Positions 24,750 to 50,084 of a DNA stretch of 64,000 bases are shown here, piece after piece (within the stretch, counting starts at the first letter, position 1; every line of letters begins with the position of its first letter). Under the pieces are notes generated by a model that saw only the letters and a list, made by a program, of their open reading frames with translations, searched no databases and had not been told where the DNA came from. This stretch comes from Laetmonice hystrix (taxonomy: Eukaryota): positions 13,082,001 to 13,146,000 of the forward strand of contig OZ249445.1 of assembly GCA_965235115.1 (NCBI GenBank), given 5' to 3'. The position numbers and the translations under genes were made by a program.

Positions 24750-27016
24750 TTAATTAGTGAACGGATTAATGCCTGTTGAGAAAGGTTACATTGGTGTAAA
24801 CACCAGCACCTGACTACACGGGACATGGTACAGCCTCTGGCCGTCAGCCTGCCATGCAGGACCGTGCACAGACCACTGCCACCAGTGAGTCGCAATTTTG
24901 TTTTGCATTAGTTGGTTATATATTGCAAAACGCGCATTTTGAATCGGGAATTGTGATACAATACCTCATATCTTGAGCCTTGTGGATTCAACAAAGGGGC
25001 TGGGCTTCTGAAATACCTGTCATTTATACATTTGCAAACAATCTGTTGGAAAGATACCTGAGAACTTCTGATAAAGGTCAGTGTAGTGTGGAGGATTGTT
25101 CTTTAGTTATTGTTGCCTGTTGTTGATTGTTGTTGATTGTTCCAAAAGGGAGGTGTATGCTAAGTAGGGCAAGCCCCTTACTGGGTCAATATGGCATTGG
25201 GAATTAACTAACTAATAAAGTTTCATCCCCAAGAATTACCGTTTTGATGTAAAAGAAAATGGATTAAAAAGGCACGAAATTGTGAGGTCTGACTGTTTTC
25301 TCTGAGTAAAAAGATCTGCCCTATCAGTTCCAATTTTATTTTATTTATTTATGCTATACACGTAATGGGCCATCCTTAAATCCCTAAGGTGTGGATCCTT
25401 CTGAAAAGTATCCCAGTTTGGGAGTGCTCACTATGATTCTTACAGTTACACCCTTGAATACACCCATTCTTACACCCTTAAATCATAAATTATCGATTTG
25501 ATCTTTTGAAAATAGGATTAAAGAAAGATCTGTTATTTTTCACGATATTTTAGATTTAAGAAGTTGTTAATTCGTTCTCTACATAATCAAATGTGTATTT
25601 TTTTCTCGTTAAAGGTCAGCCTGATGATGTAGTCGGAGAAGGTCAACCTGATGAAGAAGTCGGAGAGAACGCAATATTATACTTGACCCAGAGAAGTCAG
25701 ACATGAAAACAACGATTCACCAACTGTGACATTCAGAATACTGCGTGTAATGTGCTCTCAACAGTGAATGATTAGGTTTCAGACATGGTGACAAAAAGTG
25801 CGAACTTTATCTCAAAATTCGAAGGAGTTTTACACAAGAAGAGTCTAGCGACTTAAAGCTACTTAAAAAAGTGTTACTATGGTTTAGTTATGGATTTCCT
25901 GTTTTGGGCCGTGGTTTCACTATTGAGCCACTGTTGGTGGTAGCAGCACACTGTGGGATCAGATTGGTTAAGACTGACTGCGAGTCGGTATGTAGAGGTG
26001 ATAGTAAATCCACCCCGGACGGCTCCGTGGGCCTGTTACGAGGTTTCCCACCCTTTTTTCGGCCTAGTTCCAGCCCCATTCATTTCCCCTACTTGCTTTG
26101 GACACGGTTCAGACGTTTGGGCTTTCCTCACAGGAATCCTGAATGAACGAATATCAAATTCTCATAATAAATCAAAATTATTTTGTTGATATGAAAGGGT
26201 TGGGAGATTTGGTGCAGTTTAAACTCCAGAGTGAGACGTAGATGGCTGGGATGGTGTTGATCTCCTGGCTGTACACGACGTTTTGACCTAGACTTGGTCT
26301 CACACTGTAGCATGCTCTCAAAAACTGAAGAAACACAACCTTGTGTGCAAAACAGGAAAACCTGCTCTTTCAAAACCTTAGCATAGAGAGGAAACTTCAC
26401 AACATCATTGTCCCGTGTTTCTACCTTATTGTCTAGATGTAACAAGGTTGTTAGACGTGTAAATATTAGACTTATTAGACTGAAGGGCAAGATCTCAAGA
26501 ATATATGTACGGAAACCGAATGTAGGAATTTCATTTATTTACAATTTATTTACAACAGGGACAGAAGCACCTACCAGTAGTACAACGGGGTGCCTGACGT
26601 ATTTTAGAATATTTTAGGTTGTCTTTCATGTTTTCTTAATGTGGACGGAGGAAAAAGTAGGGATATACGGAATCGTAAAGTAGGAATTTCATTTTCAAAT
26701 AGGGAGAGAAAGGACCTACCAGTAGTAGAGCTGTGGTCTTTGATGTAAAGATGTTTTTCATGTAACTGCTTTTTAATTGTCATGTAGTTTAGCTTTATTG
26801 ATTGATTGTTGTGTATTAATGTAGTATATTATTTGTTCGGCAGAAAGCTTTTGTGCAGTACTGTAAAATAGGCTAAAGTTGGTGGTCGGAAAGTTTATGT
26901 ATGTAAAACCTTCATGTATTAACAAAGTATATTGTTATAATGTTGGCCCCGTGGTCACGCAGTAAGATTGGAAGTGATAGCCTATATATTAAAGATTTTT
27001 GTGGTTCCGTTTTTCG

Positions 27017-27159
27017 CCACCAGGGGGCGCTCGAGCCAGCAAGGGGCTGGGCAGGTGGTTGGTCACGGATGACCGGGCTCATCACCAGGGGGCGCTCGAT
27101 CCGGTGAGGGGCTGGCCGGGTGATCGTCACGGATGACTGCGCTCTTCACCAGGTGGCGC
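27017..27159 (+). promoter_or_regulatory. Array of three CTCF-consensus motifs, ~65-bp period
   Basis: ccaccagggggcgc (27017-27030), tcaccagggggcgc (27082-27095), tcaccaggtggcgc (27146-27159). The motif is seen directly; binding is not shown. Confidence 0.55.
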
Positions 27160-27629
27160 TCGACCCAGTGAGGGACTGGCCAGGTGACTTGCTTGGACTC
27201 AGTGGTTGTGAGTACCCGATTCTATGTGTATCTTGGTTTGTTTTCAAGGCTGGACCTGTGCTGAAGGGTTTATTATGTCCATTGTGTTACTGAGTATCAA
27301 ATTACAGCGGACTTCCATGTTAGCTGTTGTGTCATTGTGGTGCTAGGTGATGTAGACGACAAGCAAGCCGGAGTGAGATCCCAAATGTGTGAGTTGACAA
27401 GTTTATGTGTTCATCTGACTTCAGAGAAATCTGTGGTGTCATGTAGTATGTAACTGTTGGTGTAACATTCCTTTGGTCATATGCATTGGTCATTGTTATG
27501 TGTCTACCTTTGATGTCACGAATTGGAAAAAGGTTTGATTAGGCAGAGGGTTTGGTAACCTTAGTGGTTTTAATACCAAGGGGGCTCTTATTATTATTTA
27601 GTAATTTAGTAATATTAGTAATTTAAAAT

Positions 27630-30600
27630 GTTGGGCTAGGATAGGACAATGTTATGCAACTCTATTCAGGAAATTTTTATTTTCTGCCGCAGTACATCTT
27701 TGATCAGGCTCCAGATTTTAAATGCTTCAAATGATGAGGAAGCAGTGTTGGTCGTGAAAGGAAGGAAGGGGATGGGAGCATTAGATGGTCAGTTACTGAT
27801 CAGTTCGGAGCAGGAAGTTTTAAGCCTGCGTTTGTAATGAGCTGTGGTCTCACACATTGTTACATGTACATTGGGAGCTGTAGGAAACTCGTGACAATCG
27901 GACATTGGAGTGTGAGATATTTTCTGAGCGAGATCCCTACTGAGGGGTGGCCATCCAGGCAGGGACAAGTGGGTCGATTTTGGCCCTTTTACAGGGTTTC
28001 CCCCAGGATTTTCAAACTGGGGAGGGGGGGGATCAGCAGGAGCAGGACACAGATAAATCAGCAGCAGCCACCCGCATCACTTGAAGGCTGGGCGGGGGGG
28101 GGGGGGGGGTTAGGCAGTATAGTTTGTTCTCCTGCCTATAACCACTTGTTTTTTTTTCTTCATAACTCAGCAAGCATTGCAAAAAATTACTTCAAATTTT
28201 TTCTGATAAAAATTGTCTAAAATGAACTCCCCCCCCCCCCCCCACTAAGGATCCAGCCCCAGGTTAGTGTGACAATTTATGGCTGTAGGATAGCAGATGT
28301 ACACATTCAACTTGCATTTGAAATTTCGTATCACTGAAAATTAGTGGGGGGGGGAGATATCCCCCCCACAGATCCTGAGTGGGAGGGGGGGGGTTGAACC
28401 CCCCGGGGAAACCCTGTTTTTGTACCCTCGCTGAGAGCTACTGAGGAGTGGCCATCCAGGCAGGGACAAGTGGGTCGATTTAGGCCCCTTTAGTACCCTT
28501 GCTGAGAGCTACTGAGGGTTGGCCATCCAGGCAGAGACATGTTGGATAATTTAGGCCCCTTGAACCTACGGTGCTTACTTTAAGTAGGAAATGTGGGCAT
28601 GGACAAGAGCTCTATTTGACATGGCTAGTAAAGTTTTAATGGCAGGTAGTGTAGTGGCGGGTACTGAAGCGTACCTAGTCTTTAGGTATAGTTCGTTGGA
28701 GTCTAGGTATCCGATAAAAGGGAATGAGGCCGTAACTCATAATTCCTAGTAATTACAACTGGTAACTCTGTGGCTGGAGTTAATACCAGGCACATTGAGG
28801 GCACATTGTGGACTCTCTCCTTGATACGTCAGTGTCTGCCAGAATTCAGTGTAATACCTTTAATTTAGATACTTGGGGGTACAAGTTAGTGATAGGGAAT
28901 AGATAGATAGATAGGAATAGAATAGGGTAGAACAATGTTATATAGTCTGTCCCGGAAATTATTTTTATTTCCTGCCGCAGTCCGTCTTCGATCAGGCTCC
29001 AGACGTTAAATGGATTAAGGGAGGAGGAAGCAGTGCTGGTAGTGTAGTCTCCATCTGTGGTCGTAGAAGAGATTTGTTAGGTCTCCCTTTACAATTTGTA
29101 AAGCCTTTAAGGGGCGGATAAAGGATTTTTGGTAAGGAGGAGAGTTTTGGGGGAGAACTAGCTTGGGGGGGGGGGATTAGCATGATGAATTCATAAAGTT
29201 CAATGGAGAAAAAAAAAGAGAAGAAAATGGCTGCCGGTGGGTTGGGGATGGGGGGTTAGCACGATCAATTCATAAAGTTCAATTGAGAAAAAAAATAGAA
29301 GAAAATGGCTGCGGGGGGGGGGGGGGGGGGGGGTTAAACCCACTAAACGCCACCCCCGGATCCAACACTGCTTTTGGTGACCCTTAAGGGTCAAACGTAC
29401 ATCTGGAGAGGGTGCTACAGAGGGACCATCTGAAACAGGAGACAGTGGGTGAGGTCTGTATTGATCCTGTGTAAGAAAGGGGGTGGGGGTATAATAGATG
29501 GTCAGTTACTGGTCAGTTTGAGTAGGAAGTTTTAAGCCTACGTTTGTGTTGAGCTCTGGTCCCACACCTTCTTACATGTAGTCTATTGAGATTTGTAGGA
29601 ACAAATCGCACATTGGTGTGTGAGATATTTTGATTGTGAAATATCCAGGCCAATTTAGGCCCCTTTAGTACCCTTGTTGAGAGCTACAGTTGTTAAAGTC
29701 GGAAATACAATACAAATATAGGTATAGTATTCTGATTTTTGGGTCCCATATCGTGACATTGTAGCGTATTTTCAGGACAGTCACGTGGTACAAATGTACA
29801 GTCAGATTGCTTAGCAAGTATAATATTGGCATGTACTGTATAGTATAGACAAGAGTTCTATTTTACATGGTTAATGAAGTTTTTTAAAGGCAGGTAGTTC
29901 AGTTACGGATAATGGGGGGGGGGGGGGTATGGGTGTTACTCTTTCGGAATAGTTATTTCGGTATACATGTAGTTATTTTATTGGGGTCTAAGGATCTGAT
30001 AAAGGGAATGAGGCCGTACTCACTAGTAATTACAACTAGTAATTCTGTGACTCGATTCAATGCCAGGCGCATTGAGGGGAATGGACTGTCTTTGATATGA
30101 TGAGAGCCAGAATTCAGTATGATTTAGATACTTTGGGTACAGGCGATATTAAACTCGACTTGAGAGTTTGCCGTCTGTCCATCCAGACAGTAACAAACCG
30201 GAGTGGAAGATGTCTGGCTTGTTCAGCGTGGTATTAATACCGGCAATCTGAAGTTGATATAGCTTCTTATTATCTGCTGGCCAACCTGGGAATGCCACAG
30301 TATATACACGCTGAGTTCTTTAGAAATATTTGAAGGATGGGTAGAAGAGGTCAGGTGGGAGGAATTACGGTAGCCTTAATTACAGTCGTAATGGGTGATA
30401 TAATGGGTACAAATATTGGTATAGTATTCCGATTTTTGGGTCCCATATCGTGACGTTGTATCGTATTTTCAGGACGGTCACGTGGTACAAATGTACAGTA
30501 TAGGCAAGAGTTCTGTTTTACATGGTTAATGTTTTTTTAAAAGCAGGTAGTTCAGTTACGGATAATGGGGGGGGGGGGGGTGTATGGGCGTTACTCTTTC

Positions 30601-31130
30601 GGTATAGTTATTTTTTTGGTGTAGTTATTTTATTGGGGTCTAAGGATCCGATAAAGGGGAATGAGGCCGTACTCATAATTACTAGTACATATGTAATTAC
30701 AACTGGTAATTCTGTGACTGGAATCGATGCCAGGCGCATTGAGGGGAATGGGCTGTCTTTAATATGATGACAGCCAGAATTCAGCATGATCCCTTTAATT
30801 TAGATACTTGAGGTACAGGCTATATTAAACTCGACTTGAGAGTTTGCCGCCTGTTTTTTTTCTCACCACGTGTAAGTGGATGAAGTGTTGTATCAGGACC
30901 GGCTGTCCCCCCAGACAGTAACAAACCGGAGTGGAAGATGTCTGCCGGTATTAATACCACACTGAACGAGCTGAAGTTGATATAGCTTGTTATGATCTGC
31001 TGGCCGACCTGGGAATGCCGCAGTATTTACACGCTGAGTTATAAATCTTTAGAAATATTTGAAGGATGGGGAGAGCAGGTCGTGTGGGTGAGAGGAATTA
31101 GCCTTAATTACAGTCGTAATGGGTGAACAA
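27630..31130 (+). repeat. Degenerate internal direct duplications
   Basis: Repeated blocks: 27630-27760/28920-29045; 27775-27930/29490-29640; 28590-28880/29845-30140/30500-30820; 29700-29800/30410-30500; 30140-30400/30820-31130. Confidence 0.8.
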
Positions 31131-31546
31131 AGGCCCGTTTTGAATTGGCGGCCTATATGGCCATTGTAGGATCAGTACTAGTTGTGACGTCAAAGGTTGA
31201 CCCATATCATTGACTTGTGTTGTGTGACCAAAGTGAATGTTATACTTTCAGTTATGTATTGTATGGAGTCATAGATTTCAATGTTGTTGGGTGAACTCAT
31301 ATTCTTGTTGACTTATACAGTAGGGATCTCACTCTGGTTTGCAGTTGTCTACTTCACCAAGTACTTTGATGACGCAGCGGTTGACATGGCGGTTCTGCTG
31401 TGATTTGGTACTTAGTAATACAGTGGGCATGTTAAACCTTTTCAGTACAGGTTCGGCCTTGAGAACGAACTGAGGTACGCATGGACTTGGGTACTCGTGA
31501 TCACTGGGCCTGAACAGGTCACTTGGTCAGTCTCTTGCTGGGTCGA

Positions 31547-31689
31547 GTGCCCCTGGTGGAGAGTTCGGTCCTCTGTGACTGATCACTTGGCCAGCCTCTT
31601 GCTGGATCAGCGCACCCTGGTGGTGAGCTCGGTCATCAGTGGCCAATCACCTGCCCAGTGCCTTGCTGGCTCGAAGCGCCCCCTGGTGG
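31547..31689 (-). promoter_or_regulatory. Array of three CTCF-consensus motifs, reverse orientation
   Basis: gcgccccctggtgg (31676-31689), gcgcaccctggtgg (31610-31623), gtgcccctggtgg (31547-31559). Confidence 0.55.
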
Positions 31690-32884
31690 CGAAAAACGGA
31701 ACCCCAAAAAAAGTTGAAATATAGGCTATCTCTTTTCGATTTTTACTGCGCGGTCACGGGGCATTTTTTTTTGAGAAATAAAAGAAATATATATATAACA
31801 AATTTTCATCTTTATTATCACACAACACATACAATACGAAACTTAAAATTACCTAGTGTCCACGCTGGACGAATATCGTGAAAATACTTAGTATTTTTCG
31901 GAAACATTTGAGGCAGGAAACGGCATATTGAATTGAATACAAGGGACTGAACATTGAAGCAATACACAAGATTAGTACATTGAAGACAAGGGATTGAACA
32001 AATATAAAATTTACATCGGAATATTACAATAAATAGAACATTACACTGAATAAATGAAGTTACAAGATTAGAATGTATCCCCTGCTGCAACATACTTTAA
32101 AATAGTAAAACCTTGAACTTTAACATACGTTTACAACAGTACACCTTCAATAACATACTTTTAAAACCGGACAACCTTCAATAACATACTTTTAAAACAG
32201 TACAAACTCCAACAATAAATACATAGATTATTACACACAATTGAATTACAATTACACAAGAAGAATAATTCAAGCGCTACTAAACATGAAGAAACAAGGA
32301 AAAATATCTGAATGAAAGAACATTAAATATAATACATAGGGAATAAACATTAAATTAAAACAGTAACGAACATGACAGTGTATCAAGGAAAAACAAGCGC
32401 ACAGTAACAAATTAAACAGAATGTATCCCCTACAGCTGTGATACAGCATATGTCAAACACATAGATTAAAAGAGTAAAACCTATTAGGGAGCACCTGGCT
32501 AACCAACATTGAAACTCTTCAAAACTTATAGTAAAACCTCTATTAGGGAACACCTGGCTAAACAACAGTGAAACTCTTCAAAGATTACAAACACTTGACA
32601 GCTAGTATGTACCCCGATGTGGACTAAACCCGTACCTTTAGGAAACAATTTTCTGTCAGTCACAAAGTGTTCCCTGCGTGGTTTTACTGTAATACCTGTA
32701 GAGAGTACCGTACTCTATGTCAACAACTTTACAACATTCCAGATATACATTGTGATCACATTTCATACAACCACATAGTATTTCGAGTACCAAATTATTT
32801 GGAGGCAGGAAACTGGGGGGGGGGGGGGGGGGGGGGGGGACCGGGAAATAGCGAGTCTATTTGAGTTGAGAAGAGAACAGATAT

Positions 32885-33130
32885 TTCCAGAGCTATTAAA
32901 TTTTATATAACAAGAGGAGATGAGAAATAATTCAAGAGGTACCAAATTTTATATAAGAGGAAGAAAAGAGTTAAATATTTCCAGAGCTACGAAATTTTAC
33001 ATGAGGAAGACTAGATAAATATTTCAACAGCCACTAAATTTTATATAAGAGAAAGGGAGAGGTAAATGTTTCAAGAGCTACTAAATTTTATATAAGAGGG
33101 AGAGAAGAAATTTCATATAAGAGGGAGAGA
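32885..33130 (+). repeat. A-rich degenerate minisatellite (agagctactaaattttatataagag)
   Basis: About five degenerate copies. Confidence 0.7.
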
Positions 33131-33522
33131 TATTTTAAATAGAGCATGACTGGAGGAAATAAAAGAACAAACACAAGAGTGAAAAAAGAAACGCACTACA
33201 CGTATCCCCTGCTGCTCTGGATACATTACTGTATCCCCTGGATACATGGCTGTATCCCCTGCTGCTGTGGATACATCACATTTCAAACATATACTTTATT
33301 CATATTTACCCAGGTTTTTATAGTAAAACCTCCAATAGGGAATACCTGGTTCACAAGGTGAAACAATTTTAAATGTTTGACTTGATAGTTTGAAACACCT
33401 ATCAGGCCCGAGATGGAAGACCTTCTGTGAACGAACACATACTTCTATCTAAGGAATTACTCGTGTCCGTCACAAATTGGGGCTCGAAACTGTTTGGGCT
33501 GAATGCACCCATCCTTTACACC

Positions 33523-33833
33523 GGGAGGTGGTGGTGTCGGCATGGCAGTACGGGAGGTGGTAGTCTGGTCATGGTAGTACGGGAGGTGGTGGTCTGGTGT
33601 TGTCACGGCAGCAGTATGGGATATGGTAGCCTTGTCATCAGTCATGGTGGTGGTACCGGAGGTGGTGGACTTGTGATGGCAGCAGTACCGAGGTGGTGCC
33701 CTCGTCATGGCAGAGTATGGGATGTGGTGGCCTTGTCATGGCAGCAGTACCTAAGGTGGTAACCTCGTCATGGCAGCAGTAGGAATGTGGTAACCTCGTC
33801 ATGGCAGCAGTACGGGATGTGGTGGCCTTGTCA
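33523..33833 (+). repeat. ~32-bp minisatellite (gtggtggccttgtcatggcagcagtacgggat)
   Basis: About ten degenerate tandem copies. Confidence 0.85.
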
Positions 33834-34194
33834 GGGACATTGGAATGGTCTCGGAGGTCTTGTCTTGTATACCAAGTGGTGATGTCAATACGACCACTGA
33901 CCCATTTACACACGGTCTCTGAAACATCAAACACATTAAAGGTCAACGTATATATAAACCTCTCAAAAAAGTTCTGTTAGACTTATTTCTGTTCAATTAT
34001 TCCTCTTTGATGTATTTTACAACACAACTATTGATTTATATACCGTGGTAGAGAACATGAAATTTGAATAAATGACCCCCAAAGGAAGCCAGTACATTAA
34101 GAAATCATTGAACATGAGCTAAAGAAAGATGAAGGTCACGTTTTTAAATTTCACAAAATTCTTGCTAAAACAGCTGTGGAGAAAATCATTGATC

Positions 34195-34510
34195 ATGGTT
34201 AGGCTTTCAAGTCTGGAGCAGGCTCGTGCAATTGGTCTTTTGGTATCAGCATGGAACAAAGGATGTGTTGTCAGGCATTCAAGGCATTGGCTTCAAGTAC
34301 GATATTGTCAGGCATTCAAGGCTTCAGGCTTCAAGTACGATGTTGTCAGGCATTCAAGGCTTCAAGTACAATGTCAGGCATTCAAGGCTTCAAGTACGAT
34401 GTTGTGGGGCATTTAAGGCTTCAGGCTTAAAGTACGATGTCGTCAGGCATTTTGGTGTGCACAGGCAAACCATCTCCAGGCATTTTTTGTGGAACAGTGG
34501 GTCGAATCGG
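34195..34510 (+). pseudogene. Tc1 transposase N-terminal HTH remnant split by a minisatellite
   Basis: MVRLSSLEQARAIGLLVSAWNKGCVVRH...[repeat]...VVRHFGVHRQTISR, matching the Tc1 paired-like motif RAIG.L..G....VARHFGVH..TISR; frameshifted by the repeat. Confidence 0.75.
34267..34452 (+). repeat. 31-38-bp minisatellite (gttgtcaggcattcaaggcttcaagtacgat)
   Basis: About five to six copies, each beginning with the VVRH codons of the transposase. Confidence 0.85.
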
Positions 34511-34522
34511 GCATTTAATTAA

Positions 34523-34688
34523 AGCGACAGTCTCGTCCTTCAGCATTGCCATCCTAACGGTCGATGTGCTGTTTATAGACGTCAGTTCCCATGCTGTAGC
34601 ATAGGAGCTGACGTCTATAAATAGTAGGCCTACATCGACTGTCAGGATGGAAGCCTATCGCACAATGCTGAAGGACGAGACTGTCGCT
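34523..34688. mobile_element. 166-bp almost fully palindromic MITE, TTAA-type end
   Basis: TTAA|agcgacagtctcgtccttcagcattg ... caatgctgaaggacgagactgtcgct|TTAC; further nested stems (ccatcct..gtcgatgt, tttatagacgtcag). Confidence 0.8.
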
Positions 34689-35339
34689 TTACAGCATGCG
34701 TAGACTTTATGTACGGTGTATTGATGCTATATTGGTGGCTATACAAGTTATTGATGTTTTCATGTAAAAACATGATTTCAGCTTTCCTCATTGTGCTTAG
34801 GCTGTCTTTTGTCTGGTTGGTAAAAATTGAACGATTTTATCCACAGCTGTTTTAGCAAGAATTTTGTGAAATTTGAAAACGTGACCTTCATCTTTCTGCA
34901 GCTCATGTTCAATGATTTCTTACCGTACTGGCTTCGTTTGGGGGGCATTTATTCCGCAGTTTCATGTTCTTCACCACGGTATATACATCATAGTTGTACA
35001 AAGATATCAAACAGAAATAATTGAACAGAAATAAGTGTAACAAAACGTTTTTTGAGAGGTTTATGTATATGCATGTGTAAAAATTCATGGTTGTTCCATA
35101 ATCAGTTTGTAACAGCTCAGCAGAAAAGTTTAAATCAGTCGTAACACTGCAGGACTTGTGGCTTTGACCACACTAAACTTTGTCACCTAACTTAATGAAT
35201 TAATTCGGAAATGTCACACGATGGGGGACAGGATCGACACTCTTAATGCTTACCTTTGACATATACATGTCAAGGATTAGATTTCTTTAAAAAACGACTA
35301 TAAGACAAACAGGATGGGGCAGGGACATCTACCTGTTCA

Positions 35340-35945
35340 ATGACTACCGTCAGAGCCGTGGGTTGTCTCGGAGGGTTTCTTAGTTCTCAGAGTTATGTGA
35401 CACTGTCTATCGCACCCCACTCACAACTTGTCTCTGAAACATTAACGGTCAATTTATACCTGCTCACATACATGCATGCTCAATGTTTCTGGGAGCTTTA
35501 TGATTGTACTCAAGCAGACCTTTCATCTTTCTACAGCTCATGTTCAATGATTTTTTACCGTAACGGTGGGATAGTGAGGTGGGACGTTCCAAAGTATCGC
35601 GCTGAGCACCCAGAATTTCCTAACCTGAATGAGCTCAGCGATGGGTTGTTGCAAGCAAATCGCTTGTTGCGTCGCCTAGTGTAGCACCAGCTTTAGGTGA
35701 CACAAATGAGGGCAGAGACTGTCACTCTTTTCGTTTACCTTTTTTGTTCAGTGATTATACCATGTAGTCACAGCCGTGGGTTGTCTTGGAGGTTTCAAGT
35801 TCTTGAAGCGGTTGCATGAGACACCGTCCAATCACAGGCCACTCACGACTTGGCTCTGAAACATTAACAGTCACTTTATACTTGCTCACCTACATGTGTG
35901 TAAAATGGTTCCCGGCTATTATATAACTGTGCTCAAGCAGATTTT
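35340..35945 (+). mobile_element. Additional Tc1-like fragments (two direct ~170-bp copies plus a C-terminal-like frame)
   Basis: 35340-35510 is similar to 35765-35940; shares ttcatctttct.cagctcatgttcaatgatt with the TIR; frame HPEFPNLNELSDGLLQ...RRLV resembles a Tc1 C-terminus. Confidence 0.45.
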
Positions 35946-36989
35946 GGACTTGCCGTCACTGCACTCGACTTGCTGGAATGGTCTGGTATGGTATGGTCCA
36001 GTATGACCAGACACGCAAAACTCTTGACCCAATCAATATCATCTGGTAACCCGGTTCTAGTCTGTCGTCACTGACCCGGGGACATCGTGTCACCGCAGCT
36101 CGTATATGTGTCAAACAGCACCACACTGACTAACTTTCAACAACTAATCATTTGTCTTCTTTTATACACTGCAAATGTGCCTTAGCGACTCACAGAACAT
36201 CTTGAGTTGTCAAAGGGCATCGCTGGGTTCAGCCCCGTGCGTGGGAGGATGCTCAGAGTGTAGTGGGACCGCGATTTGTTTTGATTTAAGATCTGGCTGA
36301 AGAATGCTTGTAAGAACTGTCCTGATTGGTCGCAAGGTTGTCGGTGATTGGTTAAATCTCCTGAGCTAAATATGAGTTTTGCTCCTGGTTATGCCAGGGC
36401 GTATACGTAAGCATACAAAGCACCTAAACGTTACGCACTGGTCACAGGATGATCAAGATTGGCAGTAAAGTATAAATTGCTCTATCGCTGCATGACCCAC
36501 TGCAGTTCACCTCCAGCGTTTGTGGCTCCCCCCGTGGGGATCAGGGGTAAGAATGATCCTGAGCTCAACCCCTGGCTGTTTGTGAAGGATGACAATTGGG
36601 GCAAGAGCTGGTGTGGGGAAGTTGTTGAGTGTTTGATTTCTCTGGCTGGCCCTTACTGGGGCATCAAAAGTTTTGGTATGTCCACCATAATGTACCCCTC
36701 ATTTAGGATACAACATTATAATAACAATTTTCTGTTTCTCAACTTTCAGATCCTTTATAAAAAAAACAAGCAAAGGGTCTGGCATTTCGGTTTCCACTTT
36801 GCCGGTACGTGTAGTCCTAGGGAAGACGTCTGGATGCACAATTAGTGGAAAACTGATTCAACTCCAATCTGACATGGAAGCTGCACATGGAATTCTAGTA
36901 TGTACATGGCATTTTGATTTATTGTGATGAAATTTTGAAGAGGCTGGTTGTGCACGAAAGTTGCAACAAAGTTGCATATTGTACGCCTT

Positions 36990-41377: not shown

Positions 41378-41542
41378 AGTGCTTGGCTCAGGCCAAACTG
41401 TGTATGACGTCACGTTTCTGTGAGTGGATGATTGTAAACACCCTAGGCAAAAAAGCGTGCCGAGTTTTTCAGAACCGATCAAGTGCTTGGCTCAGGCCAA
41501 ACTGTGTATGACGTCACGTTTCTGTGAGTGGATGATTGTAAA
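41378..41542 (+). repeat. 104-bp tandem duplication; second copy interrupted by the retrotransposon and resuming at 51930-51977
   Basis: agtgcttggctcaggccaaactgtgtatgacgtcacg... at 41378 and 41482. Confidence 0.9.
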
Positions 41543-43387
41543 TGTGACCCTCGTATAGGTAGCGTCAGGGTCGGTTGGGGGATACAAAGGACTTTAATGC
41601 GCTGTTGCTGTTTTAAAGCATTTTATTTCAGTATTCACTCGACAAGTGCCAATGTTGCAGTGCCCAAAACAGGTCAGGGGCTAATACCCGAAAAAATGGA
41701 AAAAAAGACAATTATTAACATGGATCAACATGGTTCAGTTATGACCAACCTTACCAACCCCTGTCACGTTTAGTTCTTAATTACATACACTGCAAGTATA
41801 GTATAATATTCTTGATGTCTGTTATTTCCTTTACATGTACATATTTCTCATAGTATTAACTCTTATGTTACACTCTTAACACTCCGATCTTCCTCATAGT
41901 AATGCACACATAACTCTTCTGTGATACGACTAACACTCAAGGCTGAGTTAACAGCTGTACCGAATACGTGAAAAATAATAGGACTACAACTAAAATGCGA
42001 AATGATGACAGTAATACAACAAACCACAAAATTAGGATAACACACCTATGACAGAGCCATCTAGTCTCAGCTTTTACCAGTGCCATAAGGGACCTCTACA
42101 GTGCTTACTCCTGAGCACTCAACTGGGGGGATTCTCCCCTCAGATAGAGATATAACGTAAGAAACCTAGAAATTTGAATATAACATAAATGATAATAGAA
42201 AAGTATGCGGGAATCCCACAACTGCACTAACTAGCGGAAGCTCTGTTCTATATACGCATGTTGCCTGTGCTTATTTCACTTGGATATGATAACCACACCA
42301 TATAAACCTTCTGTCATGTCTCAAATAATCAATTTATCCTTGAACCTTGTGCTCACCTGATATTTAGTGAACGTTGTATATAACACGGTAACTCTCCTCA
42401 CCCTAAAGTAACCATTGGGAATAATCCCTCAGAAAATATCCTTTAATCTCCTCTTTTAAGGTTTAAAGTGGCGGTAAATAAACACTACTTACTACCAGTG
42501 GATTCATGCTGTATGACCAGCATTTAACTGGACATGTTTGGAAAACCACTGAGACTATACCACAAATATACCTTTTCGGAGAAACTACATAAACAAAGGT
42601 CGGAATTTACCATGAAAATAGGGCAAATCCATCGCACACTAATTTACAAACCAACTCAAGCTAGTAACTGGTTAATCACCCATTAGTGAACTAGAGTCTT
42701 ACTTTCCATAGTCGAGAGCACTGTGTGTACACCTTCTTCACCAACTCTTGTTAAATAATATATATATCCTTACAACTTACATATAAGTTCATGGATTGCA
42801 GTAACCGTCTGCTGATACATATTACTAATCCTCTCCCTGACTCTCAGTCTCACCATTAGCCTACATCCGTTTCATGGACACCACGTGTGCTGCCACATGG
42901 CTGTCCTCACTCCATGTGCTTACTATTGCCCTGCACTATAATACTGCTTCTAATCTTCCCATAGGACTCACTTTGTTCTGTACGGGCGGTATACTTTCGC
43001 TGATAGTAGAACTATCCTAACCCGAATCAAGGAAAAGTAAATAGAGAAATATACCAGATTTAAGAAAAGACTCACCAGTATAAGGATTCTGTCTGTGAAG
43101 CTGTGTCTTATGTGATGGTCTGCAGGCAAGTGGCAGAGCCCTGCTCCTGCCTCCCGCACATGTGCTCAGCATGGGTCATTGCAGGGGGCAGGGGTGGTCA
43201 AGTGGCGCTGACCTTTGACATCAGTAGCGTACGGTGCGACTGACCTGCCCCACACCCATAAACACCCCCACCCTGGAGTGGGATGGACCTCCCCTCTTCC
43301 TGCAACCCCAGCAGCCCTAACCAGGGGTCCCAGATGGGTGACCCTGCAGGGGCCACATATGGGTGTATGATATCCTCCAGGGTTACA
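41543..43387 (-). repeat. 3' LTR (1845 bp)
   Basis: tgtgaccc ... gggttaca; constant 8542-bp offset to the other LTR, identical ORF-track entries, no mismatch at spots checked by eye. Confidence 0.97.
41622..41627 (-). terminator. Candidate polyadenylation signal AATAAA, ~80 bp from the LTR end
   Basis: + strand tttatt; equivalent site at 50164-50169. Confidence 0.5.
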
Positions 43388-43400
43388 TACTCCCCTGTTC
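43388..43400 (-). other. Polypurine tract
   Basis: Minus strand gaacaggggagta immediately before the TGTAACC start of the 3' LTR. Confidence 0.85.
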
Positions 43401-43437
43401 AAATTCGCTGGACCTCCAGCGAACTCACACTACGACT

Positions 43438-46400
43438 CTACTGCCTAGCACCAGCAATCATCTGTGCCAGGAGTAGCTGTGTCTGTGCTATTTGTGCAAG
43501 TACAGTCTCATCTGTCGCCTCCCTACAGACTTCCTCTGAATTAGCAGCCTTTGGAAGATGGTGACGGTTTCCATGGAGACCTGCAGTGGTTCGCTTGGAC
43601 CGCCTGGGGGCTGGCTGTGGCCTTTCGGATACGTCGTCATCTGACTCTATTGCCCCCGGCGTCTCACGCTGCTCCCCTGTTCTTTCTATTGCAGGCCCCT
43701 CATCCCTTGCTTGACCCTGGGGAACTGCTTCCTCCTGCTGCTGTATGGGGCCCTCAGGATCACATCCAACCCTGGGACCTGGATCACCTTGGGACTCCCT
43801 TGTTCTGTGGGTACCAGAGGTACTGGCAAAGACCCCTTCCCCTCGGTGTGGTCTGACTCTGGGTCGTACAGCTGGCCTAGGTGCCTGGCTGCAAAAGAGG
43901 ACCCTCCCCTCCCCCTCAGAATCAGAGCTGCCACTTTCCTCAAGGAGCGGCCTCTCCTTCTCCTTCCTAGGGAGTACAGGATGGGTATCTTGATGGTTCA
44001 GTTGATCTCCCCCTAAGTCACCAAGGACTGGCTCAGGAGCCTGCAGGATGTCCCTACGATTGAGGGTTTTCCTAGGACCTCCCCCCTGCAATGGCTCGAC
44101 CATGTACACAGGGCCCTGGGGATCTGGCCGGGCTACAACTTGGTAGGGAGTTGAATCCCAGTAGTCTTGCATCTTGTTCCGGCCAACAACTGACCGATTA
44201 CGGATAAAGACATGTGTCCCAACTTTCACCCCTTGGTCATTGGCTTTAGGCTCATGGTAGGCCTTGCGCCGTAGAGCCTCCTGCTGACTGTTATGGGTGG
44301 CCTTGGCAAAGGCATCGGCCAACCTCCTGTAGTGGTCGGCTACCCACTCATCCACCCCTCTATTAGGTCTGCCCTCTCTGTGGCCCCCAACCCCAAAAAG
44401 CTGGTCCACTGGGAGCCGCGGTTCCCGACCAAAGAAAAGATAACATGGGGAATACCCCGTTGAAGAATGCGGGGTGGCATTATAGGAAAATACCAGTTCT
44501 GGCAAATGTTCAGGCCACCTCTGCTTTTGGGCGGGCAAGAGTGTCCTCAGCCGATCATGCATGGTCCTGTTAAATCTTTCACACTGCCCGTTGCCCTCTG
44601 GATGGTAGGGTGTGGTCCTTGATTTCTGTATGCCATAGATCCCACACAACTCTTGGACAACCTCGCTCTCAAAGTTGCGACCCTGATCACTGTGGATGCG
44701 GTTGGGCACGCCAAACCGAACAAACCAATCACGCACTAACACTCGGGCCACAGTTCTTGCCTTCTGGTCGCGAGTAGGGACTGCCTGTGTGAACTTAGTG
44801 AAAACGTCAGTCATGACCAACACATTCTCATACCCTCCAGCTCCTACCTCAAGTACTGTGAAATCTATTGCCAGGATCTCAAGCGGCCTTCGGGCTTGGA
44901 GTGACCCCATGGGGCTTATCACTTTCTGCCCCGCCTTAGCCAGCAAACATCTGTGACAGTGACGGAGATGCTGCTCTACATCTTTTTGGAGGGACGGCCA
45001 ATGAAAACGTGCTCTCAGCAGTTGCACTGTGCGCTCAATACCCTGGTGTCCTGCTTCATCATGCAGGGCCACCATCACCCTCTCCCTACAGCATGCTGGG
45101 AGAAGCAACTGGATCACTTCCTCCCCACCAATGTTGGCTCTACGATAAAGTACTCCCTCTTTTGTCACCAACTGTGGGAGACAACGTAACAGCTTTTTGA
45201 CCCCTTTGCTCTCTTTAGCAATCTGCCTTTTTGAAGGGTGCCTTCCCTGCTTGTGAAAGTGGAAAAGACGTGACATTTCTGGATCTGCCTGCTGCCGTTC
45301 AACCAACTCAGTGGAGGACAACTGTGGTAGTGTGTGGGTAGTGATAGGCTCTGTCCCCGACCCCCGGGTTTGCACTTCCTGCAACCAGACTGGGTCCATG
45401 TGGTTTGCCCACTCCTTTCTTAACTTGGGTGGCATTGCAGTGCACTGTGTGGCAGAAGGGATGACCTGAAGTACCACTTCCTCTATTGCCTCATGACGCC
45501 AATCAGCTGGCGCTTGGCCATGATCACTTTTTCGAGACAAGGCGTCAGCATTTGCATTGGCTTTGCCCGACCGATACCGGATATCAAAGTCAAACATTGC
45601 CAGCTCAGCTGCCCAGCGAGTCTCTACTGCTCCCAGCTTGGCACTACTCTGGAAGTATGACAAGGGGTTGTTGTCCGTGTACACAGTGAACCTCGACCCA
45701 ATCAGCAAGTCCCTAAATTTGACTGTCACTGCCCAGCGCAACGCTAATAACTCCAACTTCATGGAACTGTAATTTGACATGTTCCGCTCATTTGGCCGCA
45801 ACCCACGACTGGCATATGCCAGAACAACCCTGCCCCCTTCCTGGTCCTGAGACAAAACCGCTCCCAGACCCTTGTAACTCGCATCGGTCTCCAGAATGAA
45901 AGGTTTGGTGTAATCCGGATACCCCAAGACAGGTGCATGAGTGAGCCTGTCCTTCAACTGCTGGAAGGCACCCTGACACTCCTCAGACCACTTCCACTCC
46001 TTACCTGCCTCAACCACCTTTCTCTTTCCTCTCTTTCTGGCAGGCCCTAAAAGCCCATGAAGTGGGGCCGCAATACTGGCATAGCCAGGCACAAACCTCC
46101 GATAATATCCGGCCAGTCCCAAAAATGACCTAACGTCATGCTCTGATTGGGGCACAGGCCACTCCGCCACTGCCCTGATCTTCTCAGGATCTGGCGCCAC
46201 TCCCTCTGCCGATACCCTATGTCCTAGGTAGACAACATCCGGCCTGCCCAACTTACATTTCTCTGGCTTTACCTTTAAGCCCCACTGACCCAACCGGGTC
46301 AGCACCAGATCAAGACGCTCCACCATTTCATCGAACGTTCGCCCGAACACCAAAATATCATCTAAATAGATAAGGAGGAACTGGAAGTTAACGTCCCCAA

Positions 46401-47880
46401 AAATTTTGTCCATCAACCTCATGAAGGTTGCAGGGGCATTACAAAGGCCAAAGGGCATCCGCGTATACTGGTAAAGCCCACCGGTACCAACCCTGAAAGC
46501 CGTCTTTTCACAATCCTCCTCGCGCATGGGCACCTGGTAGTAGCCATGGGCCAGATCGAGGGCACAGAAGTAACGAGCTCCCTTTAGGGCGTCAAGGGCC
46601 TCCTCAATCCTGGGTAGAGGATAGGCATCACGGTGTGTTTTGGCATTAAGGGCGCGGTAATCAACACACACACGCAACTTTCCATCCTTCTTGCGTAGAA
46701 GGACAAGTGGGGCGGCATATGGACTAGAAGACTCTTGAATTATACCCTGCTCTAATGACTTTTGTAAATATGCCCTCACCTCTGCCCATTGATGGGGTGG
46801 GACCATGCGATGTGGGACCTTGACAGGCACATCATCCTTCAAGATTATCCGGTGCTCTACAGCAGTGCACAGGCCGACATCATCATCATCTTGGGAAAAT
46901 GTACCCTCATGGCGAAGGATCGCGTCTTTCAGCAGCTGCTTTTGCTCAGCAGACAACTCTGAGGACACATCCACCCTTTCCCATACATCTTGCACTACAG
47001 CCTCACTACCTGTAACATCACTACCTAACTGCCTACCCACCTGCTCAAATGTAACGGTCTGTTCATCCTGCCGTGACCTAACCCTAGGTGTCGCCTCTGC
47101 TGCAGCCAGCTTACCTATCAATGATCCTGCAGTAAGGTAGACATCACTGTCCCCCCAATTAGCAACCTGGACTGGGACCCTACCCTGAGCAGTGACCGTT
47201 ACTGCGCAGCGACCCACTGACACACTTGCTGGCAAAGATCCACTTCCCTCCACCTTCTCGACCAAACCTACAAAGGGTTGCTCTGCTCTTCTGGTGGTAC
47301 AAGAAACTACAACCAGGGAGCGTGCTGGCAACCTCACTGGCTGACGACCAGCGACTCGGACAAGAGAGGGTGTGGCCCCTTTTGCCTGGACCTCCTCACA
47401 CTGAGCTAGGGCTAGCCCCCAGCCATCGTCCCCACTTAGTTTCTTTCCCCTAAGCCTTTCCTGCACCCTCCTCAGAATATTACATCCTATGACCCCTGGA
47501 ACCCTTTTTTTTCTAACTGCCATAGACCCAGTAGGGTCCTTCACTACTAAGAAGCCCATACCCTCCAGGGTTTCTCCCTCTACCTTTAAGTCTAACTCCA
47601 CATAACCTAAATAGGGAACTTCTAAGCCCTGGGCCCCACTGATCTTCAAAAACCTCGACACATCAGTAATCTCCTTCCCTGACAGGTGTTTCATGAAAAA
47701 CTCCTCAGTCACTGTGGAGACTGCAGCACCTGTGTCCAACAAACACCTTACCCCATCGACTGGTCCCAAACCAACAATAGCCTCGGGGCACACTCCCACT
47801 GCATTCTCCAACACTGAGCCTGCTCCTACTTCCTGGCAGCCCACCACGTGGCCCTCCGTGGGAGGCTCTGCTAGTTTAAC
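43438..47880 (-). CDS. pol: Pol polyprotein (protease, RT, RNase H, integrase, long low-complexity C-tail), predicted to be entered by -1 frameshift
   Basis: LLDTGA (DTG at 47728-47736), RMPFGLCNAPATF, IYLDD (YLDD at 46357-46368), LETDAS..GLGAVLSQ, HHCC, IDF / SDQGRNFES / NGQCERFN, GPY/F-like domain. Uninterrupted 1469-aa ORF; the frame is open upstream to the slip site. Confidence 0.97.
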   Translation of the reverse strand, partial: VKLAEPPTEGHVVGCQEVGAGSVLENAVGVCPEAIVGLGPVDGVRCLLDTGAAVSTVTEEFFMKHLSGKEITDVSRFLKISGAQGLEVPYLGYVELDLKVEGETLEGMGFLVVKDPTGSMAVRKKRVPGVIGCNILRRVQERLRGKKLSGDDGWGLALAQCEEVQAKGATPSLVRVAGRQPVRLPARSLVVVSCTTRRAEQPFVGLVEKVEGSGSLPASVSVGRCAVTVTAQGRVPVQVANWGDSDVYLTAGSLIGKLAAAEATPRVRSRQDEQTVTFEQVGRQLGSDVTGSEAVVQDVWERVDVSSELSAEQKQLLKDAILRHEGTFSQDDDDVGLCTAVEHRIILKDDVPVKVPHRMVPPHQWAEVRAYLQKSLEQGIIQESSSPYAAPLVLLRKKDGKLRVCVDYRALNAKTHRDAYPLPRIEEALDALKGARYFCALDLAHGYYQVPMREEDCEKTAFRVGTGGLYQYTRMPFGLCNAPATFMRLMDKIFGDVNFQFLLIYLDDILVFGRTFDEMVERLDLVLTRLGQWGLKVKPEKCKLGRPDVVYLGHRVSAEGVAPDPEKIRAVAEWPVPQSEHDVRSFLGLAGYYRRFVPGYASIAAPLHGLLGPARKRGKRKVVEAGKEWKWSEECQGAFQQLKDRLTHAPVLGYPDYTKPFILETDASYKGLGAVLSQDQEGGRVVLAYASRGLRPNERNMSNYSSMKLELLALRWAVTVKFRDLLIGSRFTVYTDNNPLSYFQSSAKLGAVETRWAAELAMFDFDIRYRSGKANANADALSRKSDHGQAPADWRHEAIEEVVLQVIPSATQCTAMPPKLRKEWANHMDPVWLQEVQTRGSGTEPITTHTLPQLSSTELVERQQADPEMSRLFHFHKQGRHPSKRQIAKESKGVKKLLRCLPQLVTKEGVLYRRANIGGEEVIQLLLPACCRERVMVALHDEAGHQGIERTVQLLRARFHWPSLQKDVEQHLRHCHRCLLAKAGQKVISPMGSLQARRPLEILAIDFTVLEVGAGGYENVLVMTDVFTKFTQAVPTRDQKARTVARVLVRDWFVRFGVPNRIHSDQGRNFESEVVQELCGIYGIQKSRTTPYHPEGNGQCERFNRTMHDRLRTLLPAQKQRWPEHLPELVFSYNATPHSSTGYSPCYLFFGREPRLPVDQLFGVGGHREGRPNRGVDEWVADHYRRLADAFAKATHNSQQEALRRKAYHEPKANDQGVKVGTHVFIRNRSVVGRNKMQDYWDSTPYQVVARPDPQGPVYMVEPLQGGGPRKTLNRRDILQAPEPVLGDLGGDQLNHQDTHPVLPRKEKERPLLEESGSSDSEGEGRVLFCSQAPRPAVRPRVRPHRGEGVFASTSGTHRTRESQGDPGPRVGCDPEGPIQQQEEAVPQGQARDEGPAIERTGEQRETPGAIESDDDVSERPQPAPRRSKRTTAGLHGNRHHLPKAANSEEVCREATDETVLAQIAQTQLLLAQMIAGARQ

Positions 47881-49001
47881 GGTGGCTGACGAGGCTGTAC
47901 CTCCGGAGCATGGTTACGGTATGGACGCTGGCGCCCTCTCTCCTGCTGCTGACTCTCAGCCCCTCTACATTCTCGGGCAAAGTGCCCCTCTCTCCCACAC
48001 CTAAAGCACCTACCCTGGCGACGGTGGGTGGAGACCCGCTGCTGAGGTACTACCTGGCACCTTTCCAACAACTTCGCCAGTACCTCCCCCTGCTGGCGCA
48101 GCATCTCCGTCTGTTGTATCACTGCCGTCTCCAGGGCAGAGTGGGTGAGACCTCCAGTGGGTGCGCCTACCTCCTCAAACCCTACCTCCTCTGCCTGCAC
48201 CTTACCTCCACTACACCTCCAGTGCTGCAGAGCAAGATCGCGCATCCCAAACACACCAAGGCTGGACTGCTCGGTGTTTAGGCGTCGCATCTCCTGCTGC
48301 AGGACAGGGTCCGCTACCGCACCAGCTAACCGCTTTTTCAACACTTCATCCCGCCGACTTGCAAGCTGGGGATCTAATTTTGTCATCCGGTCATAAAGAT
48401 CGACCAAGTCAAGGGAGGCCGTGAGGACACTAATCCCCTCCACTTGTCGATAGGAGTAGAATCTTGCCTGGAGCTCATCTACAGCGACCCCATCGCCGAA
48501 CACCCGTTGTAACACCCCCAATGCCTCGTCTACATCCTTAGGGCCCCTCAACACAAGTTCCCTACGTGCTTCACCCTTGAGGTTATTTAGCACAAAACTA
48601 AGTGCAGCCTGACCCGAGAGGTGATGCAGCTTAACAGCCTGAAGCACTTCCTGGGTGAAGTCATTGACTGTCCGTGGATCACTGGCCGTAGGCTGTCCCA
48701 GATATTGCCTTATTTTGTGGCCCTCCAAGGTGTATGTGGCTGGGCCAGCCTCAGCTGCCAGTACTTGGACAGATGCCGCAACACTCGCATCTGCTGAGTC
48801 ACCCCCTTTGGACCCCCCTGGAGTGGCTACAGCCCCATCACTAACTGTCAGTGTCCCCTGGGTGGCCCGCGCCAAAGCTGACTCTGTAGCAGCTAACTTT
48901 TCCCGCAAGTCACGCACCTGTTCTTCCACCTCCCTCCTAGCTGCTTCTCTAAGTTTACTGGTTTCGGTCTCTAAAAGGGCACGGACAGCAGCCTCATCCA
49001 T
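47871..49001 (-). CDS. gag: Gag (376 aa from MDEAAVRALL) with N-terminal coiled coil, capsid-like core and CCHC knuckle
   Basis: Open ORF; CFRCGREGHFAREC at 47967-48008. The first ATG is 49001; the ORF track's upstream 20 codons overlap a polypyrimidine tract/acceptor. Confidence 0.93.
   Translation of the reverse strand: MDEAAVRALLETETSKLREAARREVEEQVRDLREKLAATESALARATQGTLTVSDGAVATPGGSKGGDSADASVAASVQVLAAEAGPATYTLEGHKIRQYLGQPTASDPRTVNDFTQEVLQAVKLHHLSGQAALSFVLNNLKGEARRELVLRGPKDVDEALGVLQRVFGDGVAVDELQARFYSYRQVEGISVLTASLDLVDLYDRMTKLDPQLASRRDEVLKKRLAGAVADPVLQQEMRRLNTEQSSLGVFGMRDLALQHWRCSGGKVQAEEVGFEEVGAPTGGLTHSALETAVIQQTEMLRQQGEVLAKLLERCQVVPQQRVSTHRRQGRCFRCGREGHFARECRGAESQQQERGRQRPYRNHAPEVQPRQPPLN
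47874..47880 (-). promoter_or_regulatory. Predicted -1 ribosomal frameshift heptamer G UUA AAC
   Basis: Last two gag codons TTA AAC precede TAG; the -1 frame GTT AAA CTA GCA... is the pol frame; a potential stem-loop follows. Confidence 0.75.
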
Positions 49002-49022
49002 AGTGAATACTAAAAGTTGAAG

Positions 49023-49110
49023 CTGTAAGAGTGAGAGAGAGGGTGGAGAAAAAAAGGACAACCCAATGGAAGGTCAGACCAATGGAGAGAGAGAAGGAGA
49101 GTAGGTCAAC
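49023..49110 (-). promoter_or_regulatory. Strong splice acceptor 21 nt upstream of the gag ATG
   Basis: Minus strand ...gtcctttttttctccaccctctctctcactcttacag|cttcaac; further pyrimidine runs upstream. Confidence 0.65.
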
Positions 49111-49860: not shown

Positions 49861-49914
49861 TCGCCCCCTGGTGGTCCTCTCATGGGTTGGCGCTGACGTC
49901 ACGCCCCCTGGTGG
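49861..49914 (-). promoter_or_regulatory. Two CTCF-consensus motifs in the retrotransposon 5' leader
   Basis: Minus strand ccaccagggggcg at 49861-49874 and 49901-49914, 40 bp apart, with a tgacgtca palindrome between them. Confidence 0.45.
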
Positions 49915-50063
49915 TCACCCTCACACCGTCGTCTGGTGGTTCCGCCTAGACTGCCGCTGCCTCACGCCTCAGTCGTCTCCCGGCCCGGTTCGTCTCCCTC
50001 CTGTAGGGGAGTCACCCCTGACCTGTGTTTTTGTGGCATCGTTTGATACTGCGCTGCCTTTGT

Positions 50064-50081: not shown

Positions 50082-50084
50082 AAT

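Follow-up and report, generated by a model that had tools for sequence, protein, structure and literature searches.

Hairpin RNA (hpRNA) loci of Drosophila make endogenous small interfering RNAs (PMC10317233, PMC10292708). In this study, we analyzed an inverted repeat with arms of approximately 580 bp in a 64,000-nucleotide stretch of the genome of the spiralian Laetmonice hystrix (hereafter, the window; GenBank assembly GCA_965235115.1, contig OZ249445.1, positions 13,082,001 to 13,146,000 of the forward strand). The mismatches between its two arms point almost entirely in one direction, and the repeat probably encodes a long hairpin RNA whose stem is kept paired by selection. Like the fly hpRNA loci, which are multi-copy or fast-amplifying and often located on one chromosome, it is a non-coding long inverted repeat with a loop and belongs to a family multiplied mostly along a single chromosome. 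In the fly loci, the function lies in the double-stranded stem, and the stem described here may be functional in the same sense. The ability of a long inverted repeat to form an extended duplex on the transcribed strand, by which an hpRNA locus is recognized, is also predicted: cofolding of the arms with ViennaRNA gave −894 kcal/mol and 537 inter-arm pairs for the + strand, and −617 kcal/mol and 429 pairs for the − strand. The fly hpRNAs are typically young and fast-evolving, whereas the stem in L. hystrix is old and strongly conserved, and G-U accounts for approximately 16% of its pairs. The host is a spiralian, and we know of no hpRNA loci described in spiralians.

The nearest conceptual match is man-made. 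In plant hpRNA[G:U] transgenes, C-to-T changes break the inverted repeat at the DNA level, while the RNA hairpin survives with 18–26% wobble pairs; this design avoids DNA methylation and self-silencing (PMC9263138). The L. hystrix repeat shares with it the one-way changes, a comparable wobble fraction and the decoupling of DNA from RNA. The transgenes carry only C-to-T changes and only in the sense arm, whereas here the changes affect both arms and include transitions of both kinds. That breaking the DNA palindrome would benefit the L. hystrix family is a conjecture.

Giant microRNA (miRNA) hairpins of invertebrates, which extend known conserved miRNA genes, are highly paired, reach lengths of hundreds of bases to over 1 kb, and are conserved within lineages (PMC12553114). 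The hairpin proposed here is likewise long, highly base-paired and conserved. Unlike the giant miRNA hairpins, it has a loop of 0.9–9 kb in its various copies, and a search of the whole window gave 0 Rfam matches at the gathering score; a known Rfam family, including the miRNA precursors, was thus rejected. Foldback and terminal inverted repeat (TIR) transposons also have long inverted arms with tandem sub-repeats, a non-coding interior and many copies. The present arms differ from theirs in not lying at the ends of the repeated unit, in having homologous flanks, and in being conserved beyond the neutral level.

A G-U pair of an RNA helix reads as A-C on the opposite strand. Selection on a helix therefore leaves one-way transitions, which reveal the strand on which a conserved RNA structure is read. 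This signal is usually read from cross-species comparisons of short helices, tens of base pairs long, whereas here it is seen at one locus, over approximately 580 bp and 90 columns. We found no natural long inverted repeat with a one-way wobble bias in the literature searched, which was incomplete.

One-way mismatches between the two arms

The inverted repeat consists of the following parts, with coordinates given within the window.

26945..27530, + strand: left arm, 5' half of the proposed stem, 77% identical to the reverse complement of 31175-31765
27531..31174, + strand: variable interior (proposed loop) with direct repeats (71-bp tandem units, and units of ~660 bp and 1.27 kb) and poly-G tracts
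31175..31765, + strand: right arm, 3' half of the proposed stem, pairing with the left arm in the alignment

Columns with G opposite T on the + strand are called G-T type below, and those with A opposite C are called A-C type. The full-arm alignment of 26945-27530 with the reverse complement of 31175-31765 comprises 579 columns at 76.9% identity. It contains 90 transitions of the G-T type, 3 of the A-C type and 41 transversions, and a longer local alignment gave 92 and 5 transitions, respectively. The imbalance between the two transition types has a two-sided binomial p of ~3e-23. Three other inverted repeats of the same window served as controls; their G-T:A-C ratios were balanced (8:11, 12:12 and 7:5), and their transversions outnumbered their transitions. 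A sequence-only reading of the window had reported the bias for 27145-27265 aligned with the reverse complement of 31441-31560, and we reproduced this count (left/right T/C 14, G/A 12, C/T 1, A/G 1, with 1 transversion and 1 indel). Its statement that the bias continues along the rest of the arms was borne out by the 90 and 3 transitions over the full length, and the balanced transition directions that it had named as the contrary outcome were not found.

The remaining mismatches are also uneven. The extra T-versus-A differences mentioned in the same reading are present (18–23, compared with 6–10 A-versus-T), and on the + strand the transversions include ~23 U-U and ~8 A-A mismatches. Its recurrent TG doublets were likewise recovered; adjacent wobble columns form TG 10 times and GT twice, where ~3.5 of each are expected. 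In RNA helices, G-U is the best tolerated mismatch, followed by U-U, and tandem wobbles are best tolerated in the UG/GU (5'-UG-3') form. The kinds of mismatches that survive between the arms fit a helix because they are the best tolerated ones. In the window copy, 75% of the columns are Watson-Crick pairs and 16% are G-U pairs, and the predicted stem is therefore ~91% paired.

The + strand is rich in G+T from ~26500 to 31700, and the sign of the skew reverses just beyond the right arm. The interior is weakly conserved among copies and G-rich on the + strand. Homopolymer G tracts of 13–27 bases, one of them a C tract, occur in the interior and the right flank (28089-28108, 28229-28243, 29312-29333, 29913-29926, 30566-30580 and 32812-32839). 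Contig breaks are apparent at 29304-29344, amid these tracts, which may be real or may reflect a sequencing weakness.

To date the asymmetry, we compared 27 left/right arm pairs from this 627-Mb genome, 22 from chromosomes C11 (the chromosome of the window) and C10 and 5 from chromosome C20. Each of the 27 pairs has 84–99 columns of the G-T type, 3–12 of the A-C type and 51–68 transversions, and 65 G-T columns are common to the C11 and C20 subfamilies. Because the bias is found in all pairs and these columns are shared, the asymmetry is inherited and older than the family, not the product of a process acting at the window locus. An assembly error was ruled out as its cause because the bias recurs in all 27 paired copies; the stretch is also covered by two genome-size contig sets (X1 and X2).

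All of the copies already carry diverged arms, and polarization was possible for changes within the family and for those later than the C11/C20 split. Each column has four states (left and right arm in C11 and C20), and a state that differed from three matching ones was taken as derived. The changes since the split, read on the + strand, are 10 A>G, 9 C>T, 5 G>A and 2 T>C (19 and 7 transitions in the two directions, p ~0.03). Rare variants at Watson-Crick columns comprise 24–25 A>G and 33–36 C>T changes. The 64-bp tandem units of the arms show the same by eye, with GCAAG retained in four of six units and GTGAG in two left-arm units, placing C>T beside A>G. The three internal direct repeats, which the sequence-only reading had proposed as a symmetric control, yielded 14 polarized changes (among them A>G 3, C>T 1, G>A 3 and T>C 2), too few to be used.

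The neighboring bases of the polarized changes showed no preference of the ADAR, CpG or APOBEC type. A>G events have G as their 5' neighbor in 28% (background, 30%) and as their 3' neighbor in 28% (26%). For C>T events, the 3' neighbor is G in 6% (16%), and the 5' neighbor is T in 31% (29%) and C in 17% (22%). CpG sites are not hypermutable in the family, and decay of methylated CpG was ruled out on this ground. Only the old shared G-T columns deviate, with T before G in 44% compared with T before 22% of intact A. This is largely an effect of the TG doublets, which may be produced by UA>UG, by CG>TG or by a preference for the more stable UG/GU tandem wobble.

Since A>G and C>T occur in similar numbers and without neighbor preference, neither ADAR alone nor a cytosine deaminase alone explains the pattern, and no one deaminase acting on A or on C can account for all of it. 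The first two causes offered by the sequence-only reading are therefore unsupported for the polarized changes. In the case of A-to-I editing by ADAR followed by retro-copying, A>G is matched by C>T (10 and 9) and 5'-G is not depleted. In the case of strand-specific C-to-U conversion, A>G is equally common and no preference for CpG or TC/CC is seen. Both processes are possible contributors only for the oldest changes.

Conservation of the arms and of their predicted pairing

The two arms stand out as a block of conservation. The left arm is 92–99% identical among 29 other copies, whereas identity falls to 70–90% just outside it and to 77–85% just inside it. The right arm is 95–100% identical among 20 other copies, compared with 68–85% on its inner side and 62–91% in the outer flank beyond ~31885; the ~100 bases past the arm, among them the AATAAA, are also well kept, and the segment 31785-31885 is still 91–96% identical. 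There are almost no indels in the arms among the copies. The copies had been picked by similarity to the left arm, and the right arm, which was not used for picking, is even better conserved. Therefore, the conservation is not an artifact of the way the copies were selected.

Rare variants in the arm are 2–7 times less frequent per site than those in the flank and interior of the same copies, and the latter are free of strand bias (per site, C>T 0.37 and G>A 0.38; A>G 0.37 and T>C 0.39). Therefore, no element-wide one-way mutation pressure acts today. Among the singleton variants in the arms, G>T exceeds C>A on the + strand (30 and 5; per site, 0.087 and 0.020), whereas the two are equal in the flanks. 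This excess fits a tolerance of U-U and U-C over G-A mismatches, and it may also result from one-strand oxidative damage.

The changes within the arms also favor pairing. At Watson-Crick columns, 57 of the rare transitions keep the pair and 30 break it. In a tree of the 27 pairs, pair-keeping and pair-breaking transitions number 81 and 39 on the terminal branches (p 2e-4) and 23 and 3 on the internal branches (p 9e-5). Confinement of harmful changes to young branches is a classic sign of purifying selection. In addition, several columns changed on both arms with pairing kept. In C20, columns 237 and 552 have exchanged C:G for T:A on both arms. A change from G:C to C:G on both arms is seen at columns 197 and 213, and at column 466 A:U, G-U and G:C are all found among the copies, so that the full path through a wobble intermediate is represented. 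By a rough estimate, ~0.3 such pair-keeping coincidences are expected by chance. When arm partners were shuffled among copies, the mismatches rose only a little, from the observed 2071 to 2100 ± 9. The columns changed on both sides were not in excess (19 observed and 22 in the shuffles), but this control is weak because shuffling destroys the subfamily structure.

As its third cause, the sequence-only reading had offered either prolonged asymmetric mutation or selection for an RNA stem. It is the second half that gained support, from conservation that coincides with the arms, symmetric flanks, pair-keeping changes on both arms and the purging of A-C changes on internal branches.

The copy family, its larger unit and candidate signals

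Searches with each arm returned at least 40 near-copies, with identities to the window arm of 92–97% for the left and 92–99% for the right. The two arms occur together, in one order, at approximately 42 loci, ~35 on C11, 6 on C20 and 1 on C10. Wherever both search lists reach, the left arm is followed by the right arm in the same relative order, at a spacing of ~0.9 to 9 kb. All 69 genome-wide matches of a 29-mer common to both arms lie at family loci on these three chromosomes. The family occupies 0.55–27.0 Mb of C11, 12.7–15.9 Mb of C20 and 5.59 Mb of C10. On C11, the loci form four loose clusters with a spacing of roughly 0.2–0.6 Mb and occur in both orientations.

Outside both arms, the copies remain homologous and colinear from ~25880 (25348 in some) to ~35566. 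Thus, the single element bounded by the repeat, as envisaged in the sequence-only reading, gave way to a non-coding colinear unit of ~10 kb that is common to the copies and contains the arms. Its refuting case, in which the arms were inserted independently from subfamilies with prior differences, is not what the copies show, as both arms have the same arrangement in every one of them. The arms appear to be the hairpin-shaped core of this larger unit, which has been multiplied mostly along one chromosome. Most copies were compared by their arms with short flanks. The other parts of the unit are as follows.

25880..26944, + strand: left part of the shared unit; copies match at 81–94% and 70–92% in two comparisons, with strand-symmetric rare variants
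31791..35566, + strand: right part of the shared unit; colinear matches extend up to ~35566, and it holds a second inverted repeat
33949-34190 and 34830-35069: the second, ordinary inverted repeat; 83–87% alike, present in many copies, balanced (8 G-T and 11 A-C)

The ~10-kb unit contains no open reading frame (ORF) of at least 130 aa, and Pfam searches with ten ORFs of the unit gave only sub-threshold noise. No TIR or long terminal repeat (LTR) was found at the ends of the unit, and no target-site duplication or empty site was seen among the copies compared. A foldback or TIR DNA transposon was rejected, given the homologous and colinear flanks in all copies compared and the unit ends without TIR or LTR. 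Just outside the shared unit, a repeat of ~410 bp (36040-36451) has copies of 80–89% identity on C1, C2, C4, C7, C10, C12, C18, C19, C20 and C29; it is a separate, common dispersed element.

The arms are bordered by candidate transcript signals.

26936..26941, + strand: TATAAT, TATA-box-like, lying 4 bases ahead of the left arm; candidate core promoter element
31766..31790, + strand: T-run followed by GAGAAATAAAAG, with AATAAA at 31777-31782, a candidate 3'-end signal directly after the right arm

For the TATAAT, the sequence GTTATAATG is retained in most copies, including the C20 subfamily. The T-run and the AATAAA signal are kept in all 26 right flanks compared, and the flank diverges soon after. 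Contig depth provides a further hint. A 58-Mb contig set from the assembly's own sample (X4) has no library type on record, and its contig depth is unreliable; its summed depths across the locus are given below.

Left flank: 0–4
Left arm: 220–590
Interior: 0–191
Right arm: 3156–7307
Right flank: 14–66

The X4 coverage begins at ~26.99 kb and ends at ~31.75–31.9 kb, and over the arms it is far above the expectation from DNA copy number. The genome-size, DNA-like contig sets vary within about tenfold across the same bins. If X4 were a poly-A RNA library with 3' bias, its depth would fit a transcript bounded by the arms; with the library type not on record, this is only a hint. X4 also shows A>G at 27053 and 31322, without counterpart in the DNA-like sets. 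The genome carries ADAR-type A_deamin domains at several loci and a Dicer dimerisation domain.

Part of each arm is made up of tandem units with a CTCF-like motif.

27014..27200, + strand: three tandem direct repeats of 64–65 bp in the left arm, each opening with the CTCF-consensus-like CCACCAGGGGGCGC
31519..31692, − strand: mirror-image counterpart in the right arm, again three units, of 64 bp; its motifs lie on the − strand and converge with those of the left arm

Exact matches to the CTCF consensus lie at 27017-27030 (+) and 31676-31689 (−), with near-matches in the other arm units. The whole window contains 5 exact matches, where 0.01 are expected. A DNA-level role of these convergent motifs could add to the conservation of the arms.

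Two further kinds of features occur in the window. An apparently intact Ty3/gypsy-type LTR retrotransposon lies at 41540-51931 on the − strand. Its LTRs (41540-43389 and 50082-51931) are 1850 bp each and 99.95% identical; the open pol frame of 1469 aa (43438-47847) encodes protease, reverse transcriptase, RNase H and integrase, and the gag frame of 396 aa (47871-49061) includes a zinc knuckle. It looks like a very recent insertion. Two tandem arrays at 54676-55447 and 60827-63157 have periods near 88 bp and are 75–92% alike in a self-comparison of the window.

Weighing of the explanations and their meaning

The bias, its age, the block of conservation, the symmetric controls and the pair-keeping changes are best explained, in our judgment with a probability of about 60%, by a family of conserved long hairpin RNA loci that would be transcribed from the + strand and be under purifying selection tolerant of G-U and U-U. 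The arms would form the stem of a long hairpin RNA running from ~26.95–27.0 kb to ~31.8 kb, and this hairpin would be the functional core of the ~42-locus family, with purifying selection keeping the stem paired. C>T or A>G changes on the + strand would turn Watson-Crick pairs into G-U pairs; being tolerated, they would build up over time. Selection would remove A-C-forming transitions, along with most transversions and indels, or these would be compensated on the other arm. The outcome would be DNA arms that are 23% apart and an RNA stem that remains largely paired. The likeliest use of the stem is as a double-stranded RNA (dsRNA) substrate, either for Dicer-type small RNAs as in the fly hpRNA loci or for dsRNA-protein binding or editing. 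We infer the paired molecule to be RNA and not single-stranded DNA, as well as where the transcript starts and ends and which role it has. Pairing of single-stranded DNA may be compatible with the sequence, but a replication-linked DNA hairpin is disfavored because copies of either orientation occur along the chromosome.

Several points weigh against the hairpin RNA explanation. The ratio of G-T transitions to transversions is 90:41, whereas it is ~0.35:1 per direction in the control inverted repeats; therefore, either the stem is very old and its transversions have been purged, or one-way mutational input may add to selection. The G excess of the + strand extends over the poorly conserved interior, where selection on a stem leaves it unexplained; it may be compositional (G-rich repeat units and poly-G tracts) or an old transcription-linked asymmetry. 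Gene conversion between the arms could account for the changes seen on both of them and is likely for columns 197–213. On terminal branches, there are 58 apparent reversions from G-U to Watson-Crick pairs, and these may be real restorations, conversions or errors of tree reconstruction. The 65 old shared G-T columns lack an outgroup and are thus unpolarized. Searches for sequencing runs gave four runs of one sample, none of them on record as RNA, and the depth hint of transcription comes from the contig set X4. No small-RNA target was found, as the arm searches returned the family alone among the best 40 candidates and there was no other match in the window.

A purely mutational origin is rather unlikely. 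It would require a single-stranded copying intermediate of RNA or DNA, or a + strand exposed by heavy germline transcription, on which C and A were deaminated to leave a functionless G-T pattern. Both bases are indeed deaminated on the heavy strand of animal mitochondrial DNA and on the non-template strand of genes, and C>T and A>G do fall on the same strand here. The G+T richness of the entire 5-kb domain including the interior, the flip of the skew at the end of the right arm, and the surplus of G-T transitions over the number predicted from the transversions would also follow. However, the rare variants of the flank and interior have no strand bias, and mutation alone leaves unexplained why the arms are indel-free and exceed their surroundings 3–5 times in conservation, why internal branches have fewer A-C changes than terminal ones, and why both arms changed with pairing kept. 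The unit also has no hallmarks of a transposon. Transcription-linked asymmetry is mild, in the range of tens of percent, not 30:1, which further counts against this origin.

Hard-wired hyper-editing by ADAR is unlikely. An edited, near-perfect hairpin would have been retro-copied as the founder of the family, or near-neutral A>G changes would have been fixed in the genome; this would have made most of the old G-T columns, with later evolution adding the rest. The T preceding G at the old columns, the enriched TG doublets, which UA>UG would give, the several A_deamin loci and the two A>G differences seen only in X4 are in line with it. The 5'-T enrichment is equally explained by CpG>TpG or by selection for a stable UG/GU tandem, and the X4 differences may stem from other family copies. 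Moreover, approximately half of the polarized changes are C>T, the recent A>G changes show neither 5'-G depletion nor 3'-G enrichment, and the copies have homologous flanks without a poly-A tail or target-site duplication. When known systems were compared, an ADAR-hyperedited retro-copy was rejected on the grounds of the frequent C>T and the missing 5'-G depletion and 3'-G preference. Deamination of cytosines on one strand, by an APOBEC-type enzyme on exposed single-stranded DNA or through CpG decay filtered to one strand, is very unlikely. The TG doublets may have arisen by CG>TG in both arms, and per site C>T is the commonest of the rare transitions within the arms. However, A>G and C>T are equally common among the polarized changes, C>T is enriched neither at CpG nor after T or C, CpG sites are not hypermutable, and the arms are conserved, not hypermutated. 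An APOBEC-type or CpG footprint was likewise rejected as a known system for the equally common A>G and the missing TC/CC or CpG context. Finally, the arms might be two independent, opposite insertions of repeat subfamilies that already differed, or the terminal repeats of a neutrally decaying foldback or TIR transposon. The tandem sub-repeats of the arms resemble those of foldback arms, but this origin is barely credible and is already contradicted by the arrangement of the copies, the flanks and the bias: every match of the shared 29-mer is at a family locus, the two arms occur together in one order wherever both search lists reach, homology and colinearity on both sides show that the repeat does not mark the ends of a mobile element, and neutral decay predicts the balance of transitions seen in the window's other inverted repeats.

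One-way mismatches between inverted arms need not be a fossil of deaminase or ADAR activity. They can mark a selected RNA helix, and their direction names the transcribed strand without RNA data. Tentatively, the family may be a naturally evolved 'G:U hairpin', restricted to a few chromosomes, with ~42 loci and a dsRNA stem of ~580 bp. The divergence of its arms at the DNA level would remove palindrome instability and any homology-dependent silencing, while RNA pairing would be kept by wobble. If the hairpin is expressed, a candidate long-dsRNA or small-RNA system would be at hand in a spiralian, as well as a natural counterpart of the engineered G:U design; to our knowledge, endogenous hairpin RNAs are essentially uncharted in spiralians. 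The ~42 paralogs in two subfamilies are a data set for the evolution of a long stem through wobble intermediates. If the stem of this proposed 'G:U hairpin' feeds a small-RNA pathway, the family would be the first hpRNA-like system in Lophotrochozoa, and an unusually old and conserved one, and its confinement to three chromosomes would suggest a chromosome-linked conflict or a regulatory role.

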